Source of the DNA: Guillardia theta CCMP2712
Taxonomy: Eukaryota; Protista; Cryptophyta
Assembly: GCF_000315625.1 (NCBI RefSeq)
Contig: NW_005434520.1
Location: 63,489 to 127,488, forward strand
Direction: 5' to 3'
DNA length: 64,000 nucleotides
Below the pieces are notes generated by a model that worked only from the letters and a program-made list of their open reading frames with translations, did no database searches and was not told where the DNA came from. Positions 15,621 through 24,600 of this stretch are shown piece by piece. Each line of letters opens with the position of its first letter. Positions within the stretch are counted from its first letter, which is position 1. A program made the position numbers and the translations under genes.

Positions 15621-16433
15621 TCATTCATTCATGACAGACAGGTTCCTTTCTTTCTTACGCTTCTCCTTGTCCTTCTTCTTTTGACGGTCATTGAATCTTC
15701 TTTTCTCGAACGCTACTTCACGTTTTGCACCAAAGGAGATGCTAGAGGGAATGCTGATCCGCTGCACATGAGAGCATAGATCCTCCATCTCCTCATCATG
15801 CTCTCCTCCTTGCGCGTCCTCGCTCTCCATGTTCTCGTGGGCCTGAGGTTTCTTCTTTCCTTCCTTTCTCTTCTTCGCTCCCTGCACGTTGAATCGCAAG
15901 CTTCTGGGATACTTGTGCACATTGACCAGGTGCCAGTGACGCTGCAGCTCGCCCTTGAACTTCTTGCCGCATCCTTCCACCAGGCATTCGTACATGTTCT
16001 CCCGCTTCGCCATCGCCCGAAAGAAGCTGTCGTGAGTCTCCTGGACATGCAGCCCCAACAATCGGCAGGTGCGAAAGTTTGCCTTGCAGATGGAGCAGGT
16101 GTTAACATGCGAGTGAGCGTAATGCCGCTCGTACTCCTCAATGGACGAGCTCACATACCTACATCCGTCTATCCCACATTGAATCTCCTCACACACATCA
16201 TGCAGACTCTTCATCCCCAGCTCTCGCAGCCCCTTCTTGACAAGAACCTCTCTCGTAGCGTTGCCCTCCTGAAAGAACGTGTCCCAAGGAGCGTAGGATC
16301 GTTTGCAAGGCCTGTAAGCATTCATTCTTGCATCGTCGAGATTCATGGCAGTCGGACACCCGCCATGGGACACGGGCTCCTCTTGGTTGGGATCCATATT
16401 CTCTCCGGTACAATGACGCGAACGATATTCCAT
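15621..16433 (-). CDS. C2H2 zinc finger protein, ZNF511-like (5' end uncertain)
   Basis: Three fingers CGIDGC..HYAHSH, CSIC..HVQETH and CLVEGC..HLVNVH, with the family-typical 'HDSFF..MYECLVEGC..HKYP..LRF' and a C-terminal 'IPSSISFG'. Confidence 0.85.
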   Translation of the reverse strand: MEYRSRHCTGENMDPNQEEPVSHGGCPTAMNLDDARMNAYRPCKRSYAPWDTFFQEGNATREVLVKKGLRELGMKSLHDVCEEIQCGIDGCRYVSSSIEEYERHYAHSHVNTCSICKANFRTCRLLGLHVQETHDSFFRAMAKRENMYECLVEGCGKKFKGELQRHWHLVNVHKYPRSLRFNVQGAKKRKEGKKKPQAHENMESEDAQGGEHDEEMEDLCSHVQRISIPSSISFGAKREVAFEKRRFNDRQKKKDKEKRKKERNLSVMNE

Positions 16434-16859
16434 GATGCTCACTAGTTCAAGATCAAGGATCCTGCAATGAATCAAGGTCAATCCATGAACAAAAAATGTT
16501 GGAAAGACACAACCAATCCGCACTTTGCAATGCTTTCCCACATATCCTACTCACTACCTGATCATAATTTGCTTTAGTCATTCTTCTTTTTCTGCTACCT
16601 GACTCAGTGAGAATCTTGAAGAGTAATCTCGTGAGATGATAGTCCCTTCCCTCCCTCCCTCCCTCCCTCCCTCCCTCCCTCCCTGCATCGATGTCTCCTT
16701 TCAACATCCTTGAAAAGTTCACCAACGTATTTCAGCAACTTCTGCTATTCTTGCTCGTTGTGCTCCTTGGGGTCGCGATCGTGGCTCCTTATCTCCTTTG
16801 CCTTGGCGCTGCCGTAGTGCGCATAGAATCAGTTGACCCTGCAGTTCCGTGGAAGGAAC

Positions 16860-17989: not shown

Positions 17990-18689
17990 AAGCCCAGGAC
18001 CCTGGCCTCTGCTTATGTCAAGGTATCGTGAAAAATAATGAGAACGAAACAAAATCTCTATAAAAGAAATTTTTTACAGTACCGACAAAGCCAAATAAAT
18101 CACGTTTATTATTTTCTAAATATATATTATTAGTAATTTTGAAAAAAAACATGAGGTGACTAAAGTTTATGATGCTGGCTGTTCCTGCAGGAAGTTGACG
18201 TGAAGGAAGCAGGACCATGAGACCGTGAGGGAGGAGGGAAGGGAGGGGGAGAGGGCAGAGAAGAACGAGCGTGAGAGGATCAGATCGTCTGTTGAAACAG
18301 ACTTGAAGAGCAAGGATGTTGTGGGTGCATCTATTCCGAAACTTGTGTGATGAGAGCGGTGAGGGATTACTTGAAAAGGCTCCAGGGCCTCTGGAGGGAT
18401 ACAATGGAACATGCGTACCTGAACGTTCAGCTAAGAAGTCGTGCGTGTAAGGAGGTCGAAGATCAACTAGATTCTGATGGGGATTAAGGTCTTGCAGAGC
18501 ACCAGGTTCAATGCAAGTTTGTAGAGCAGAATTAGGAGTGACCATACTTGAAGTAGAAGTACACACATACAAGCGTGAGCATATATTGTGGTGTAGGAAA
18601 ACACAACAATGTTATTGTGATTATCATCTATCGCTTTGATGGTTGAGAGGCGTGAGACTCTCATATGACATGATGATACAGACTTGAAG

Positions 18690-19870
18690 ATGCCAGGAAT
18701 AGTTCGCCTGGCACTTGTTCTAAACCTTGTCGCGCCCTCAGCATGCTTCCTCACTCCTTCGATGAAACTGATTCGGCCAGGTGAAGTCTCAAGTTTGCCT
18801 TTGATTCGGTCTGAGTGTTTTTTGAGCAGCCATGGAACTGAAATCGTCATCTTTCCTGGCATCCTCTGCTCGCACTTGTACAGCATCGCCATCGCTCTCG
18901 AAGCATCGTTGCCGTGCCATGAGTGCTTTGAGGATGCAAGTGGACAAGACAAAAGGTCTAGAGCGACATCCTTCCATATTGCATGTTTTTGAACGTGTAT
19001 CGTATTCATTTCTGTGATGATATGATCTCTGTTCCCATTTGATGCCGTTATATTCATGATTACGTCTGGTGCAGCGAATTCCGGGAGTGGCAAGTCATCG
19101 GCAGCGTACAAGGCAAGGTAGTAGGCGATTTTATTTAACATGACAAGATTGTTAGACTGCATTGAGAGACACTGCCATCGCCGTTTCTCTTGCTTCCGCG
19201 TTCGGGGTAGCAAAATTCTCACCATATGCTTGCAATCGCTCATTTCCCTGTCAGATTGGTATCTGGAATTTTCTTGGTGGAGACAAGGCACTTGAATACT
19301 TCACTGGGTATCTTTTGGGTACACAAATCTCTGATTTACTTTTCTTGTGTGATCTTCCTTTGTAGAGGAATCTTTGTCTGTCGATAACTTGTTTGTATTT
19401 CTCCTTCTCTTCGAGGTAAAAGAGTAGTGCGTTTTCATGTTTCTTTGACTCATTGCTTCCACAGTATTTCAAAGTTCCTCAATCACAACAAAAAAAAGTT
19501 TTATCCTATGGAATATGGGTAACGACACAGGTCAGGATTTGATGTATCTGAGTTTCAAACAGGGCGCTATCGTGATGAGGGCTGGATTCATCTCAGCAGG
19601 TTTCCCCCCTTGTTGCTGTCTCTGCTTGACTTGTTCGTTCCCGCCCTCCTTCCACAGGTCTAGTTGCAATCCAGCAGTTTCGTGGAGTTCTCTTGGTGTT
19701 TGCTGGACTTCTGATGTATTCTTCCTTCAAGATGCTCACCGGTAAGCCCCAAGCGATGGACAGGAAGCAACGAGGAAAGACTCTACGAGAGAGCGAGAGC
19801 GAATGAGAGAGAGAGAGAGACAGAGAGACAGAGAGACAGAGAGCGAGAGCGAATGAGAGCGAGAGAGACT

Positions 19871-19924
<54 letters not shown>

Positions 19925-21146
19925 GATGAGAGAAGTGCGGAAATTGAAGTATCGCCAAAGTAGTGAAGAGATGCAACAGGAAAAGAAGAGGAAGGAGATG
20001 AAGCAGATATCAGCGAGAACTCGATCGTGAAGGTAAGCCATTTCGGACATCGGGAAGGCGTGAGATGAGATCATGGAATTCAGTTTGCGAGCAAACTTGT
20101 CCAATCTACCCCGGAATATGACGGCGATAGATTTTTCACGCTTGTTGATGGTAACCAGATTTTTCGTCTTGCGCTCTTGACGGGTGATGAAAGGTGTGAA
20201 GAAAGCGACCCCATTGTTCCTGGTTCTTCTCTGTGTCGAATTCAGGTATTTCAGCAGCAGCAGCAGCAGCAATAGTATTTGAGTTTATGCTGCGGTTATG
20301 CGATTCATGCATTGACTTCGATCGTAGCGATGTGATGTTTGCGGTCGACTCGATACCTGCTGTCTTTGGAGTCACCGAAGATCCTCTTATAGTGTTGACT
20401 TCCAATATCTTTGCAATCATGAGGTGATCCGAGAAGTTTCTTTCCTGAGGCTGCCTACTCAGCCATGTCTCCTTCAGTTTGAGGGCATTGTATCAAGTAC
20501 TGGCGCAGCTAGTGAGATATGCACTGAATGACCGTTAGTTGCACTCAAGCTTTTGCAGGCCAAGGACTTGAAGTATCTTGAGACTGCAGTTGGAGCTGTG
20601 CTGGGCTTTGTGGGTCTAAAGTTGGTGTGTTGCTCTTGCATGCCATGAAGTATGCTCACTTTGCTTGTCAAGGTTGGCGAGTATTTCGGGTTTGAGCTTC
20701 CAGAGCAAGCTTCCCTGGTAGCATGAGCATCTTTTCTTGTTCCTTCCGGCTTGGCCCGTTTCTTCTCTTTTGTCCTCATTTCTCCTGCTCCTCCCTCCTC
20801 GTATCATCTTTGACAAGCAAGCAGTCTGTCGTGATCGGGCTCCTGGGCACTGGGGTGGGAGCAAGCATCTACGAAAAGAGGCAGAAATTCAAGTTGCTTG
20901 ACCTGGACAACGATGGTTTCCTCACCAAGGTTCCTCCTAGCCTGCCTTGTTGCACAAATGTCTTAACGAACTTGCTTTTGCAGGAGGAGCTTGAAAAGAG
21001 CGGGTTGGATGTAGAGGAGGTCAAGTGACACTGTGAGTGTGAGCCTCGTTGATGGATTTTTTTTTCTGCAGCTTTTGTCGCAAGCAGACGTTGACATGGA
21101 CGGGAAGATTTCGATGAAAGAGTTCATGGACGAGTACAAGGCGTGA
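18690..21146 (+). CDS. terC: Plastid-targeted TerC-family integral membrane protein with a C-terminal EF-hand pair (spliced)
   Basis: Leader [21 protein letters not shown] (signal peptide plus Phe). Exons '[10 protein letters not shown]', '[17 protein letters not shown]', '[18 protein letters not shown]', '[13 protein letters not shown]', '[32 protein letters not shown]', '[19 protein letters not shown]', then EF loops [12 protein letters not shown] and [12 protein letters not shown]. Confidence 0.88.
19786..19922. repeat. (GA)n microsatellite in a terC intron
   Basis: Directly visible. Confidence 0.95.
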
Positions 21147-21662
21147 AGCCAAGGCTGTGATCATCGCGAAGAACGCTGTTTGGATTCGGAACTCGGGATC
21201 AAGATAGAACTCAAGTTGAAGCAAGTCTGGGTAGAAGGGGGTACTGGTCATAGGCACTGAACAACTTCAACGATTCCGAGTGATGGTTCAGTTCACCATC
21301 ATGACAACGGCGGGCAACTTTGCGCTGAGTCGAAGACTCTTCATGACTCATGATCGGAAGGCCGCTGTGGTTCGACGTGAAACTTTGTTCGTCAAGCTTA
21401 ACTTGACTCTTGACTGAGTTCAACGGTTGGGACTTGAGATACGGTACGCCGTGGTTTAAAGCCTAGTTGTGGTGAATGATTTCTTTAGTGAAAGCTTTGT
21501 CTCAGCCTAGTGTCTCAGTATAGTATGGCCCCGGGCAGCGCCGGGCCCCTGCTAGTTACAGTGGGCACACAGAAAGTGTGCGATGGCGAAGAGAGGGGAG
21601 GGGACTGCACAACAACCTTGACGATGAAAGACATCGATTCCAGCCTGTAGGATATGCTGCAC

Positions 21663-24600
21663 ATGCGGGCTGCTCTCTTGTCTTCCGTCCTCTTTTGCCT
21701 CCTGTCGCCTTCGTTCCCCTCGGGCGTGTCTAAGTTGTCGAGGGAAAGTCGCAGGTATGCTCCCCTTGGAGGTCTGCTAGAAACCCCACCGAGACACTCG
21801 GTGACGAGAATCTCCCTGGACAAGCTCAAGTCGCAGACCAAAAGCGTGCGGAGCCTGAGTAACTCAACTCGTTTGAGCGTCGAGCGAGCCTTCGACTCTT
21901 TGCTGGACGTCTGCACGTCCGACGCTGTGGTAACAGAGTCGCTGCGTCAGGCCTTCGAGACTCTCAATGTCATGAAGTCTTGTGGCGTCAAGCTAAGCAA
22001 GTCTGCCTATCGCGCTGTTATCAACGCCTGCATCGGCTCTATAACAGGTAACCAACTGCCCTTGCATCCCTTGTTGAATTTCTCTCCAGGACACGCCAAG
22101 CACACAGATCATGAACAGCAATTGATGTTGAAGAAAAAGAAAACTCTGCAGCATCTCTCATCTCTGGTGGCATCTTGTGCCATCAACTCTGTTCGATGTG
22201 AGGCTTTGGACATTGCCCTTGAGACTATCTCGGCCATGCACAACCATTCCATTCCTCTCGACCACACCGACTTCTCTCCTCTCTTCAAGGCCATCGAAGT
22301 CTTCGCTGGTAACGCTGGTCCTCTGCAAGAAGGAATCCGTAGCATGCGGACGATGCTCGACATGGGTCACTCGCCGGACGCGATTGTTTGCAATGCTCTG
22401 GTGGACATCACCTCCTGCGGCCTTGACTGATCGGACTTTTACAGCTAGAAGCCTGCACAGAGCTGTCTGCTGGAGGAGGCGTGTACGAGCAGATCCTTCA
22501 CCTGCTAGACTCTGCAAGAAGGGAACATTGCGCTGACCCTTGGGCCTACTCATCCGCACTCTTTGCGCTAAACGAAGCACAGAGATACGTGCTGGGTAGC
22601 GGCCTTGAAGTGCTGGAACTAATGATCGAGATGGTGAGGGATGAGAAGATCAGCACAGGCTCTCATGTTCGTGTTTCAGAACGTCAAGCCTGATCCGGTG
22701 ATGTGCAACCTTCTCCTTATGGAATGTGGACAAGCCGTTGCTTGCAGCGGGGGTTGCCTGGTGGAGTCTTTGCAAGTGAGCATCAAACTACCTAAACCTC
22801 ATTGTCTGATGGCATGCAGCTCATCAAATCTGCGGTTGAAGAAGGAATCGATCTGACTCAGCTTCCTTTTGATATGGTTGTCAAGTCCAGCGCTGAGGTC
22901 GCGAAAGTTTGCCTTAGAGCTTGCGACATTTTCATTCTGACTTTCAGGTTATTGCACATGAACATGGGGCAATCAGCCTTGGTGATAAACTGATTCGCAT
23001 GATGATCGAAGAAGAAATTACGGTACTATATGTTTCTCGATAAAATTGTTTGACGAGCAGCAAAATGCTTTTCTTGGTTGTCACAAGCTTGTTGCAGTTA
23101 CAATCAGAATCTATCGAGGCGTATTTGCATGGATGTTCGGAAGCAGCGCGAGGGAGTGGAGTGTTTAAGGTCTGTCGACGATGACGTTAAAGTAGATCTA
23201 TCGGTAAGTCGATTTGCAGATCTTGAATGGCATCCTGGACATCATGCAATCAAGCAGTAATCCTGTGAGATTTCGCCATCACTTTACCTCAAGTGTACGA
23301 TTGATGAATCTCTTGACAAAGGCAAATCTTCGTGTTCAATCAGAAATCATCCGCCTTTGCGCTCATGCTGGGGGCAAAGGCGGATCCTTAAGCAAGGCGC
23401 TGTCGGTGATGCAGTACCTACGCTTGCATGACGTCAAATATGGTGCATTGCCAGCAGCCGAGGCTGTGAGTGCTGATCATATGACAGATGCAAAAGCTGT
23501 TCTTGACGTCATGGATGCCGCTTATCATTCCGCGAATGGTAAGCTAAAACGATATGTTTGTGCTATGCCTGAGATAGAACAGGTGAAGGATGCCTTTTCT
23601 ATGGCTATAAGGTCACCACAGACTTGAATAGCAATGTTTTTTCCTTTACACTTGCTTTCTTTAGATCTTGCAGAGAAATGTTTTGCAGACCTCAGAAATT
23701 TCAAGCGGTGCTTTGGCCGAGACTTGATCTTCCCGTGCTGATGTTGCTGCTTTCGTAGGCAGTGAAATTCTATGCGCGATCTCATCAGCTGCTGAAAACT
23801 CTTTTGAGTTGAACGTGAGAATTTTTCTGCCCCACAATTCAGTGATAGGCCATGCTCTAGACGCGAACAAAAGATCCGTACTACGTTTTGTCAAAGAAAG
23901 GTTTCTGATGTCTTTTTGCAATCGTTGATCTCGATAACTTTTCTCCCAGTTGGTCATCAACGTCCACACAACTCCTCCTCAGCGGCCAGATCAAGCTCAG
24001 TAGGTGTTGCGAGTGAGGTTGTGCTGGAAGGCGTCAAGGTTGTGGAATCGTTGAGTCCTCAGCAACTTCATCGCGCTGTTTCTTTGTATGCGAGCTGTTG
24101 GCTTGTCGCCACGCTGACCTGGCTTCCTAGGGCGATCGAGACCATCTTGAAGGAGTGCGCGGGCGTGAAATCGGTTGGGTTCTTGGATGACCTTGAGGGA
24201 TCTGAGACCCAAGAAGGAATTTTTCGACTTGGTATTGAGGTTGAAGGAGCTTTTGCCCAGGGGTATGTGCGATGTGAAGTCGATTTAGGTCTTTCAAACA
24301 ATGGCTGATGCGGGGTTGAAGCCGTCAGATCAGGCGATTTGTTCGTTGATATCTGTATGATAGCTGCTCCAAACTTTTGAAAAATTCTCTAACATATTTA
24401 CAAAGACGAGTTGCAACTCTGGATTGGTGGCGAACGAAGGAGTCTCGAGATGCATTCAACTTCTCAAACGAGTCAAGGTCTGAGCATCTGCACCGACCTG
24501 CTTTCATCCGGTTGCTCAGGTTGCTAAGTGGAAGGTTGAAGACAATCAGTTGGAATACTTTGCAAAACGAGTTCTTGAATTCTGTGCGGTGGGGGCTAGA

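Follow-up and report, generated by a model that had tools for sequence, protein, structure and literature searches.

Does an EF-hand tail control a predicted plastid TerC protein in the cryptophyte alga Guillardia theta? The function of plastid TerC is still being worked out. Biogenesis of thylakoids and photosystem II in Arabidopsis requires the protein AtTerC. Bacterial TerCs are currently regarded as exporters of Mn2+ that metalate proteins in the course of secretion. A naturally occurring TerC with a putative built-in metal or Ca2+ sensor offers a handle on the question. An earlier note, made from the DNA letters alone, had read such a protein at this locus and proposed that Ca2+ regulates it. 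The window analysed is the whole 64,000-nt stretch from G. theta CCMP2712 (GCF_000315625.1, NW_005434520.1, positions 63,489-127,488, forward strand), and all positions below are those of the window.

An expressed TerC/EF-hand gene

The TerC/EF-hand gene is an expressed nuclear gene of the alga (Table 1). In each of three runs, belonging to three studies, one transcript contig without introns carries all of its exons, both EF-hand exons included, and continues into the 3' untranslated region (X1, 1494 nt; X3, 1236 nt; X4, 1473 nt). The three contigs extend from 18680 to between 21377 and 21498. As seen in these contigs, the introns are spliced GT..AG with one exception; 3 of the 18 splice joints, absent from the joint table, were deduced from alignment-record coordinates. 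At the exceptional intron the joint 19110>19154, found in three runs, carries 2 ambiguous bases, and a shift of +2 yields GC..AG ends and the sole phase that preserves the TerC frame. The joint 20929>20984, which interrupts EF loop 1, was likewise found in three runs, and in record 1 of contig X1 the pieces on either side are exactly 36 nt apart. An antisense ORF at 18467-19291 and an ORF at 18018-18572 had no Pfam match and were taken as chance ORFs.

Table 1. Positions of the TerC/EF-hand gene and its features in the window
Feature	Position	Strand	Content or basis
TerC/EF-hand gene	18690..21146	+	19 exons, CDS 1224 nt, 407 codons plus stop; frame/phase bookkeeping, transcript joints
Start codon	18690	+	ATG
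Stop codon	21144-21146	+	TGA
Exons 1-7	18690-18780, 18830-18955, 19075-19112, 19156-19206, 19255-19318, 19366-19415, 19465-19518	+	
Exons 8-13	19563-19599, 19658-19741, 19980-20032, 20084-20150, 20194-20245, 20328-20423	+	
Exons 14-19	20478-20511, 20559-20624, 20673-20717, 20825-20929, 20984-21019, 21072-21146	+	
Signal-peptide-like N-terminus	18690..18749	+	19 residues, then Phe at predicted +1; Kyte-Doolittle, motif
Transit-peptide-like stretch	18750..19112	+	exons 1-3; composition, no hydrophobic helix
GC..AG intron	19113..19155	+	shifted transcript joint
TerC/Alx-type membrane core	19156..20872	+	exons 4-17a; tblastn of three bacterial TerCs and E. coli Alx, Pfam PF03741, TIGR03718, hydropathy
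Alx E86 equivalent	19318 + 19366-19367	+	split codon; alignment with Alx
Alx D92 equivalent (Asp)	19383..19385	+	alignment with Alx
Alx E213, D216, D222 equivalents	20238-20240, 20329-20331, 20347-20349	+	alignment with Alx
Fusion exon 17	20825..20929	+	final TerC helix (20825-20872), basic linker, entering helix, EF loop 1 residues 1-10 (20900-20929)
Exon 18	20984..21019	+	final two residues of EF loop 1, Glu-Glu (20984-20989), exiting helix, short linker
Exon 19	21072..21146	+	entering helix, EF loop 2 (21087-21122), exiting helix, stop codon
3' untranslated region	21147..21498	+	X1 record 1 extends to 21498

Short exons make gene models fragile in general, and the fusion might have arisen as a gene-model or assembly artefact joining a TerC gene to a small EF-hand neighbour; no further support for this was found. 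The last TerC helix and the start of EF loop 1 share one exon, which is bounded by AG upstream and GT downstream, and single contigs from three studies span all exons. In addition, L085, an environmental contig from a 93%-identical relative, independently shows the same TerC/EF layout. The transcript contigs and the L085 layout refute the artefact, whose probability we regard as virtually nil. The coordinates, strand, start and stop given in the earlier note proved correct on translation and exon bookkeeping. Its argument that helix and loop lie together in one exon (~20825-20929) was borne out by the exon translation and the transcripts, and the spliced mRNA check that it had proposed came out positive: the fusion is present in mRNA, and the transcripts of three runs do not end before the EF exons. 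We conclude that the G. theta fusion is real.

The relative represented by L085 also allowed constraint on the gene to be assessed. Relative to G. theta, its introns carry 49 substitutions in 623 positions (7.9%) and its exons 16 in 629, of which 12 are synonymous and 4 are not. Within the EF exons there are 2 substitutions in 216 positions, with both loops unchanged (Fisher p = 4.6e-5 versus introns); compared with the other exons (14/413), the additional constraint on the EF exons is not significant (p = 0.067). Purifying selection on the fusion is supported by this comparison with one very close relative.

A TerC/Alx-type core behind a predicted plastid presequence

Family models and tblastn alignment confirm that the membrane core is TerC. 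PF03741 matched the exon at 20329-20421 alone (1.4e-9, 38.4 bits, cut-off 27.8), and a six-frame genome search with the same model gave 34.6 bits plus 61 bits for adjacent exons. TIGR03718, the Alx subfamily, was the best NCBIfam family for every exon with any match, reaching 53 bits versus 17 for YkoY, where exons were scored singly and the TIGR03718 cut-off of 246.4 bits applies to a whole protein. From the second helix through to the final one, the exons follow the same order as three bacterial TerCs and E. coli Alx, and hydrophobic segments fall in the corresponding exons. The first helix of the bacterial proteins is missing, so the G. theta core is expected to contain eight helices. E. 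coli Alx has nine helices in an N-out, C-in topology and needs E86, D92, E213, D216 and D222 for Mn2+ export (PMC10197570); all 5 of these acidic residues are conserved in the G. theta core. The protein thus resembles E. coli Alx and B. subtilis MeeF/MeeY, which are Mn2+ exporters and metalation factors of the TerC family, in its TIGR03718 subfamily signal, its collinearity and the five acidic residues. Alx differs in possessing the first helix and in ending 24 residues past its last helix with no added domain. By homology with the C-in topology of Alx, the G. theta tail should face the stroma, and clusters of Lys/Arg ahead of the first helix and behind the last are in line with this topology.

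The N-terminus contains a hydrophobic core (maximum 15-residue Kyte-Doolittle mean of 2.15) followed by ...PSAC and then Phe, as read by eye. Of the 53 complete codons in exons 2-3 (18832-19112), 23 specify Ser/Thr/Ala, 10 Lys/Arg and 2 Asp/Glu. Presequences of red-type complex plastids combine a signal peptide with a transit peptide whose first residue is Phe (or Tyr/Trp/Leu), the Phe following a small-x-small motif (PMC12136025). The G. theta presequence fits this plastid-targeting signal, and the plastid-type label of the earlier note accordingly holds as a prediction from comparison with that motif by eye. The bipartite form, appropriate to a four-membrane plastid, is unlike the presequence of AtTerC.

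The EF-hand tail and its occurrence among TerCs

The tail extends ~55 residues beyond the final TerC helix and contains two canonical EF-hand loops. Residue-by-residue comparison upheld the reading that both match the 12-residue Ca2+ consensus: positions 1, 3 and 5 are Asp, position 6 is Gly, position 8 is Leu or Ile, and position 12 is Glu. A PROSITE-like EF pattern was run against the six-frame translation of the window (127,996 residues). The full pattern gave a single match, loop 2, and its first ten residues gave 10 matches, loop 1 among them. In Pfam, EF-hand_5 matched exon 19 (21072-21143) above its cut-off (2.3e-6, 27.2 bits, cut-off 25.9), and EF-hand_6 matched exon 17 (20825-20929) below its cut-off (0.004, 17.2 bits), because an intron splits loop 1 and its exiting helix so that only part of the motif lies in the exon. 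The EF-hand pair model PF13499 gave partial matches per exon, each exon being scored singly. The language-model neighbours of exon 17 in a protein atlas were EF-hand clusters, with weak similarity (≤0.86). The two loops are separated by 15 residues, which is short for an EF-hand pair; calmodulin-type pairs have ~24 residues between loops. With this spacer, the hands may pack in some way other than as a standard pair.

Three sets of TerC sequences yielded no EF-hand: 120 C-terminal fragments of the plastid/cyanobacterial type, the second G. theta TerC paralogue (contig C598), and 120 bacterial TerCs that were the best matches of a hybrid profile built from three bacterial TerCs and the exon rows and that carried PF03741 only. 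A search with the exon-13 region and a C-terminal profile recovered fragments of ~57-200 residues from plants, Triparma, Haptolina, MERC and EukProt, none with an EF-hand. The atlas neighbours of a eukaryotic TerC fragment were all TerC-only clusters. Searching the junction exon against 1.84 billion representatives revealed no second TerC/EF junction, at a query length of 35 residues that misses orthologues below ~60% identity. Its matches were seven plain EF-hand proteins and P0001, an ORF called in prokaryotic fashion straight through the intron at 20930-20983 on near-identical environmental DNA. Contigs L087 and L090 contain a eukaryote exon 88% identical to exon 13, and both stop ahead of the tail; a metagenome walk from L090 with a degenerate 25-mer returned five chance matches and no TerC. 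The tail is therefore present on no other TerC examined, the sets compared being the fragments, the bacterial TerCs and the C598 paralogue. Nor was the combination of TerC and EF-hand in one protein found in the papers searched, and no citation of the study accession for the L085 metagenome turned up there. The earlier note had stated that typical TerCs stop after the last helix or carry CBS domains, and this agrees with the alignments and fragments, in which they end soon after that helix, and with the CorC_HlyC modules described for others (PMC4823308).

When the G. theta genome was searched with the tail, no second close copy was detected and no donor gene was identified. EF-pair matches in the genome number at least 146; EF-hand fusions are common there, and the TerC/EF fusion may consequently be of small effect. 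The C598 paralogue without EF-hands could be the housekeeping thylakoid TerC, in which case the EF-tailed copy would have a different role or place.

A proposed calcium-regulated TerC and competing readings

Absence of the tail from the other TerCs examined, together with its textbook loops, suggests that calcium may directly control the G. theta protein, and regulation of Mn delivery by Ca2+ through the predicted EF tail is plausible. A signal peptide, Phe and a transit-like stretch make up the bipartite presequence, which is expected to carry the protein across four plastid membranes, and both termini would lie in the stroma, the cytoplasm-equivalent side, as judged from Alx minus its first helix. 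The core would move or hand over Mn2+, possibly Ca2+ as well, from the stroma to the lumen or to nascent photosystem II. This step follows what has been proposed for TerC proteins, which metalate exported enzymes jointly with the Sec machinery, and for AtTerC, whose association with ALB3 fits a co-translocational metalation of PSII (PMC10550928). The EF pair, attached directly to the last helix, would bind stromal Ca2+ and so change the activity or partnerships of the core, in the role thought to belong to the C-terminal CorC_HlyC modules of some bacterial TerCs. We hold this proposal as a whole (a plastid-targeted TerC/Alx core whose stromal EF pair binds Ca2+ and alters its activity or partnerships) tentatively, at slightly under an even chance. 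An extended form, in which the protein is the first ligand-gated TerC, stromal Ca2+ on the tail switching the hand-over of Mn2+ (perhaps Ca2+) to nascent photosystem II, and is one of a set of lineage-specific EF-hand-tipped thylakoid proteins in cryptophytes, seems on the unlikely side.

The same tail might instead be a structural module, Ca2+-independent or permanently Ca2+-loaded, that senses no signal and serves to dimerise the protein or to dock ALB3, SecY or ribosomes. The 15-residue spacer points to a non-standard pair that might form between two chains, and the constraint on the tail is compatible with any function. AtTerC is impaired by a C-terminal GFP tag, so its C-terminus matters, and it binds ALB3 and PSII subunits (PMC4823308). 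However, every liganding position, including Glu12, is kept in both loops, which is usual for working Ca2+ sites and needless for a purely structural role; we consider the structural reading possible but somewhat improbable. Placement of the protein outside the thylakoid, in the inner envelope, the periplastid membrane or the ER/secretory system, is distinctly unlikely. There the tail would read the Ca2+ of another compartment, and C598 would be the true counterpart of AtTerC. Localisation is a prediction, there are two paralogues, and the N-terminus of C598 lies beyond its contig end. Against this, a Phe behind the predicted signal-peptide cleavage site is a mark of plastid, not periplastid, proteins (PMC12136025), and in its C-terminal third the protein is similar to fragments of plant chloroplast TERC and of algal TerC.

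Canonical DxDxDG...E loops normally favour Ca2+ over Mn2+, and the tail is without His or Cys ligands. Both points count against a further reading: the loops would bind the transported Mn2+ and, as a metal antenna or substrate sensor on the stromal side, feed the pore or throttle it, without reading Ca2+ signals. In line with such an antenna, the tail is predicted to lie at the cytoplasm-equivalent mouth of the core, and both Mn and Ca transport have been linked to TerC and to its relatives, the UPF0016 proteins (PMC10550928). An EF-hand protein has also been re-engineered into a Mn2+ sensor (PMC9907080), so the motif is able to bind Mn2+. Overall, the Mn2+ reading appears quite improbable.

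The proposed calcium-regulated TerC can be set beside several known systems. AtTerC/PDE149 (At5g12130), of the Arabidopsis thylakoid, is likewise nuclear-encoded and plastid-directed with eight predicted helices (PMC4823308). Plant TERC fragments, unlike the G. theta protein, end 5-12 residues past the last helix in an acidic or Ser-rich tail without an EF-hand. In bacteria a Mn riboswitch controls expression (PMC10197570), whereas in G. theta control may be exerted on the protein itself. Bacterial TerCs with C-terminal CBS/CorC_HlyC domains carry, as predicted for G. theta, a soluble ligand-binding module past the last helix on the cytoplasm-equivalent side (PMC4823308). Compared by description, that module has another fold and presumably another ligand, and no sequence relation to the EF tail was found.

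EF-hand-regulated transporters include the mitochondrial ATP-Mg/Pi and aspartate/glutamate carriers, plant TPC1 and LETM1. In these, as proposed for G. theta, an EF-hand module on a transport protein lets Ca2+ on one side tune transport. Their membrane folds are unrelated, their modules contain at least four hands or follow the standard spacing, and their regulation is experimentally proven.

Should the tail, on binding Ca2+ or Mn2+, alter transport or partner binding, an ion-handling role of plastid TerC would gain support, and stromal Ca2+ transients would be linked to assembly of the Mn4Ca cluster. If the tail is widespread or inert, the fusion would be an ordinary case of domain accretion in a protist genome rich in EF-hands. 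The C598 paralogue, which lacks EF-hands, provides a ready control within the same cell.

Spliced transcripts joining the TerC core to the EF-hand pair

The segment 18400-21500 of the window was read and translated in three frames with exon phases tracked. On the forward strand, a chain of short exons with AG/GT at their borders forms a single open reading frame, beginning with ATG 18690 and ending with TGA 21146, that comprises 1224 coding bases in 19 exons and 407 codons ahead of the stop; the coordinates and peptide readings that the earlier note had given for this gene are correct. Seventeen public sequencing runs cover part of the window, and four of these, presumed to be RNA, were compared with 18400-21600. 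Three runs from separate studies each provided one contig (X1, 1494 nt; X3, 1236 nt; X4, 1473 nt), starting at 18680 (X1 at 18827) and reaching up to 21498. Fifteen exon joints were tabulated (e.g., 20716>20824 and 20927>20982), all GT..AG except for one intron that is GC..AG after assignment of two ambiguous bases; no other assignment preserves the frame. The remaining three joints, absent from the joint table, were deduced from record coordinates; in the first X1 record, the flanking pieces lie exactly 36 nt apart, which equals exon 18 in length. Five reads from X18, a run recorded as RNA-seq raw reads and about 6% read, lie on exons and the 3'UTR. Because the contigs are without introns, they cannot originate from genomic DNA and derive from spliced RNA. 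Single contigs from three studies thus span the TerC and EF exons, as expected from the claim that the fusion is not a gene-model artefact, and the RNA-seq check proposed with that claim finds the EF exons included rather than transcripts ending before them. No form stopping ahead of the EF exons was seen among the contigs of the runs compared, which could miss minor isoforms. A gene-model or assembly artefact is excluded as the source of the fusion, and the TerC-EF fusion is confirmed.

Upstream of 18680, the X3 and X4 contigs carry 8-19 extra letters with no counterpart in the window; with one mismatch, these letters are found on four other G. theta contigs (C1, C55, C58 and C325). A dispersed repeat, a shared 5' leader or a chimeric contig end might account for them.

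Features of the TerC/EF-hand gene and its surroundings (window positions)
Feature	Position	Strand	Content	Evidence
Upstream neighbour	15621-16541	-	C2H2 zinc-finger-like ORF	weak Pfam
Intron	19113-19155	+	GC..AG ends	transcript contigs of three runs
Within intron 9	19745-19979		long (GA)n/(GAGAGC)n microsatellite
Within intron 12	20246-20327		(CAG)n run
Exon 17	20825-20929	+	last hydrophobic helix, basic linker, residues 1-10 of EF loop 1
Exon 18	20984-21019	+	closing Glu-Glu of EF loop 1, then exiting helix
Exon 19	21072-21146	+	whole EF loop 2, then stop
Downstream neighbour	21654-22430	+	PPR-like ORF, signal-peptide-like start	weak Pfam

TerC core, predicted targeting and EF-hand tail

Pfam, run exon by exon, identified TerC at 20329-20421 (38.4 bits; cut-off 27.8), and the best NCBIfam match was TIGR03718, the TerC/Alx subfamily (53 bits on one exon; YkoY subfamily, 17). 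Three bacterial TerCs and Alx, an E. coli Mn2+ exporter, align in order to successive exons, starting at the second bacterial helix and ending with the last. Alx is reported to have nine helices, N-out and C-in, and its Mn2+ export needs E86, D92, E213, D216 and D222 (PMC10197570); all five are kept in the alignment. Nothing in the window protein corresponds to the first bacterial helix, and the stretch ahead of its core is hydrophilic; this leaves eight predicted helices, as many as are predicted for the Arabidopsis thylakoid protein AtTerC (PMC4823308).

Exon 1 encodes a hydrophobic core followed by a small-residue site and then Phe, and exons 2 and 3, over their 53 whole codons, specify 23 Ser/Thr/Ala and 10 Lys/Arg but just 2 acidic residues. 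Within the bipartite presequence of red-type complex plastids, Phe distinguishes plastid from periplastid proteins (PMC12136025). Judged by eye, the N-terminus is a predicted bipartite plastid signal of algae with such plastids. From the even helix count and the C-in orientation of Alx, the EF tail is expected on the stromal side, and Lys/Arg clusters ahead of the first helix and behind the last fit this placement.

Beyond the last TerC helix, the tail comprises nine residues of an entering helix, loop 1, fifteen residues, loop 2 and seven last residues. Loop 1 has Asp at positions 1, 3 and 5, Gly at 6, Leu at 8 and Glu at 12; loop 2 has the same residues except for Ile at 8. All liganding positions are canonical, and residue-by-residue reading bears out the earlier assignment of both loops to the 12-residue Ca2+ consensus. 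Pfam reported EF-hand_5 at 21072-21143 (27.2 bits; cut-off 25.9), and EF-hand matches at 20825-20929 fell below threshold because an intron splits the motif. When a PROSITE-like EF pattern was scanned against the window in all six reading frames (127,996 residues), loop 2 was the sole match; the ten-residue head of the pattern matched ten times, once at loop 1, 190 bases upstream of loop 2 in the same gene. The spacer of fifteen residues is shorter than that of calmodulin-type pairs (about 24), so the hands may or may not pair inside one chain.

Distribution and constraint

Rarity was assessed among bacterial full-length TerCs and C-terminal TerC fragments of plastid/cyanobacterial type, using a word-index search that reaches proteins 0.55-1.75 times the query length and exon queries of at most 35 residues. 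The best 120 matches to a full-length profile, all bacterial, carry PF03741 only, as do 120 fragments among the matches listed for a C-terminal-third profile, including plant chloroplast TERC, Triparma, Haptolina, MERC and EukProt. The last helix is visible in ~85 of these fragments, which have short (mostly about 5-40 residues), mostly acidic tails and contain no EF loop. The bacterial TerCs compared end 10-40 residues beyond the last helix, in keeping with the earlier statement that typical members end there, and a TerC on a GC-rich eukaryotic contig (L088/L089) stops 11 residues past it. A literature search found no paper describing TerC and EF-hand in one protein.

Two JGI metagenome contigs (L087:3000-3875, L090:1000-1581) contain a eukaryotic TerC gene, one exon of which shares 88% identity with exon 13. 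Ahead of it lie degenerate, incomplete copies of this DSIPAV exon, set among microsatellites; both contigs stop short of the tail. A Planctomycetota TerC tail (L004:2300-2387) contains a DxDxDG-like string, DPDADGD, past the last helix, probably by chance; this protein, P0010, has no Pfam EF-hand on record.

The sole database match to the TerC/EF junction of exon 17 is P0001, an ORF called on L085 (1481 bp), a contig of the ENA metagenome assembly ERZ930064 whose study accession is cited in no paper found. The exon layout of L085 matches that of window 19895-21387, with 92.9% identity between the two, and the contig comes from a divergent strain of G. theta or a close relative. Substitutions number 49/623 in introns (7.9%, plus indels), 16/629 in all exons (2.5%; 12 synonymous, 4 nonsynonymous) and 2/216 in the three EF exons (0.9%; one synonymous, one Leu>Phe at 21072), with neither EF loop altered. 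Since the EF exons differ from introns (p = 4.6e-5) and not significantly from other exons (p = 0.067), the tail is constrained to the degree of the TerC core over this short evolutionary distance.

Putative role of the tail and genome context

The most economical reading is a putative Ca2+-coupled Mn2+ hand-over, in which the TerC core would pass stromal Mn2+ to the lumen or to nascent photosystem II, and the EF pair, attached immediately to the last helix on the stromal side, would tie the core's activity or partnerships to stromal Ca2+. Bacillus TerC proteins metalate exported Mn enzymes together with the Sec machinery, and the same authors interpret AtTerC-ALB3 as co-translocational metalation of photosystem II (PMC10550928). 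AtTerC is impaired by C-terminal tagging, and CorC_HlyC modules occur at the C-terminus of some bacterial TerCs (PMC4823308). Rival readings take the canonical EF pair as a Ca2+-independent docking or dimerisation module or as a sensor of the substrate Mn2+, or place the protein, with its predicted plastid signal, outside the thylakoid. The earlier reading as a putative Ca2+-regulated plastid TerC is partly supported.

A search of the G. theta assembly (87.1 Mb, 669 contigs) revealed a second TerC, located on contig C598 (2445 bp; L084:1-2445), its exons collinear with those of the window gene, with similar lineage-specific loops and different intron positions; microsatellites abound in its GC-rich introns. 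Past the last helix is a Gly/Glu-rich tail with no EF-hand in Pfam, and the 5' end lies beyond the contig. P0156, a Logan fragment resembling an orthologue of this second TerC, also ends without EF-hands. Neither neighbour of the window gene points to a functional link with it. The genome contains at least 146 EF-pair matches; with EF-hand accretion so frequent, a single TerC-EF fusion is less surprising, and lineage-wide Ca2+ wiring of thylakoid proteins is a possibility.
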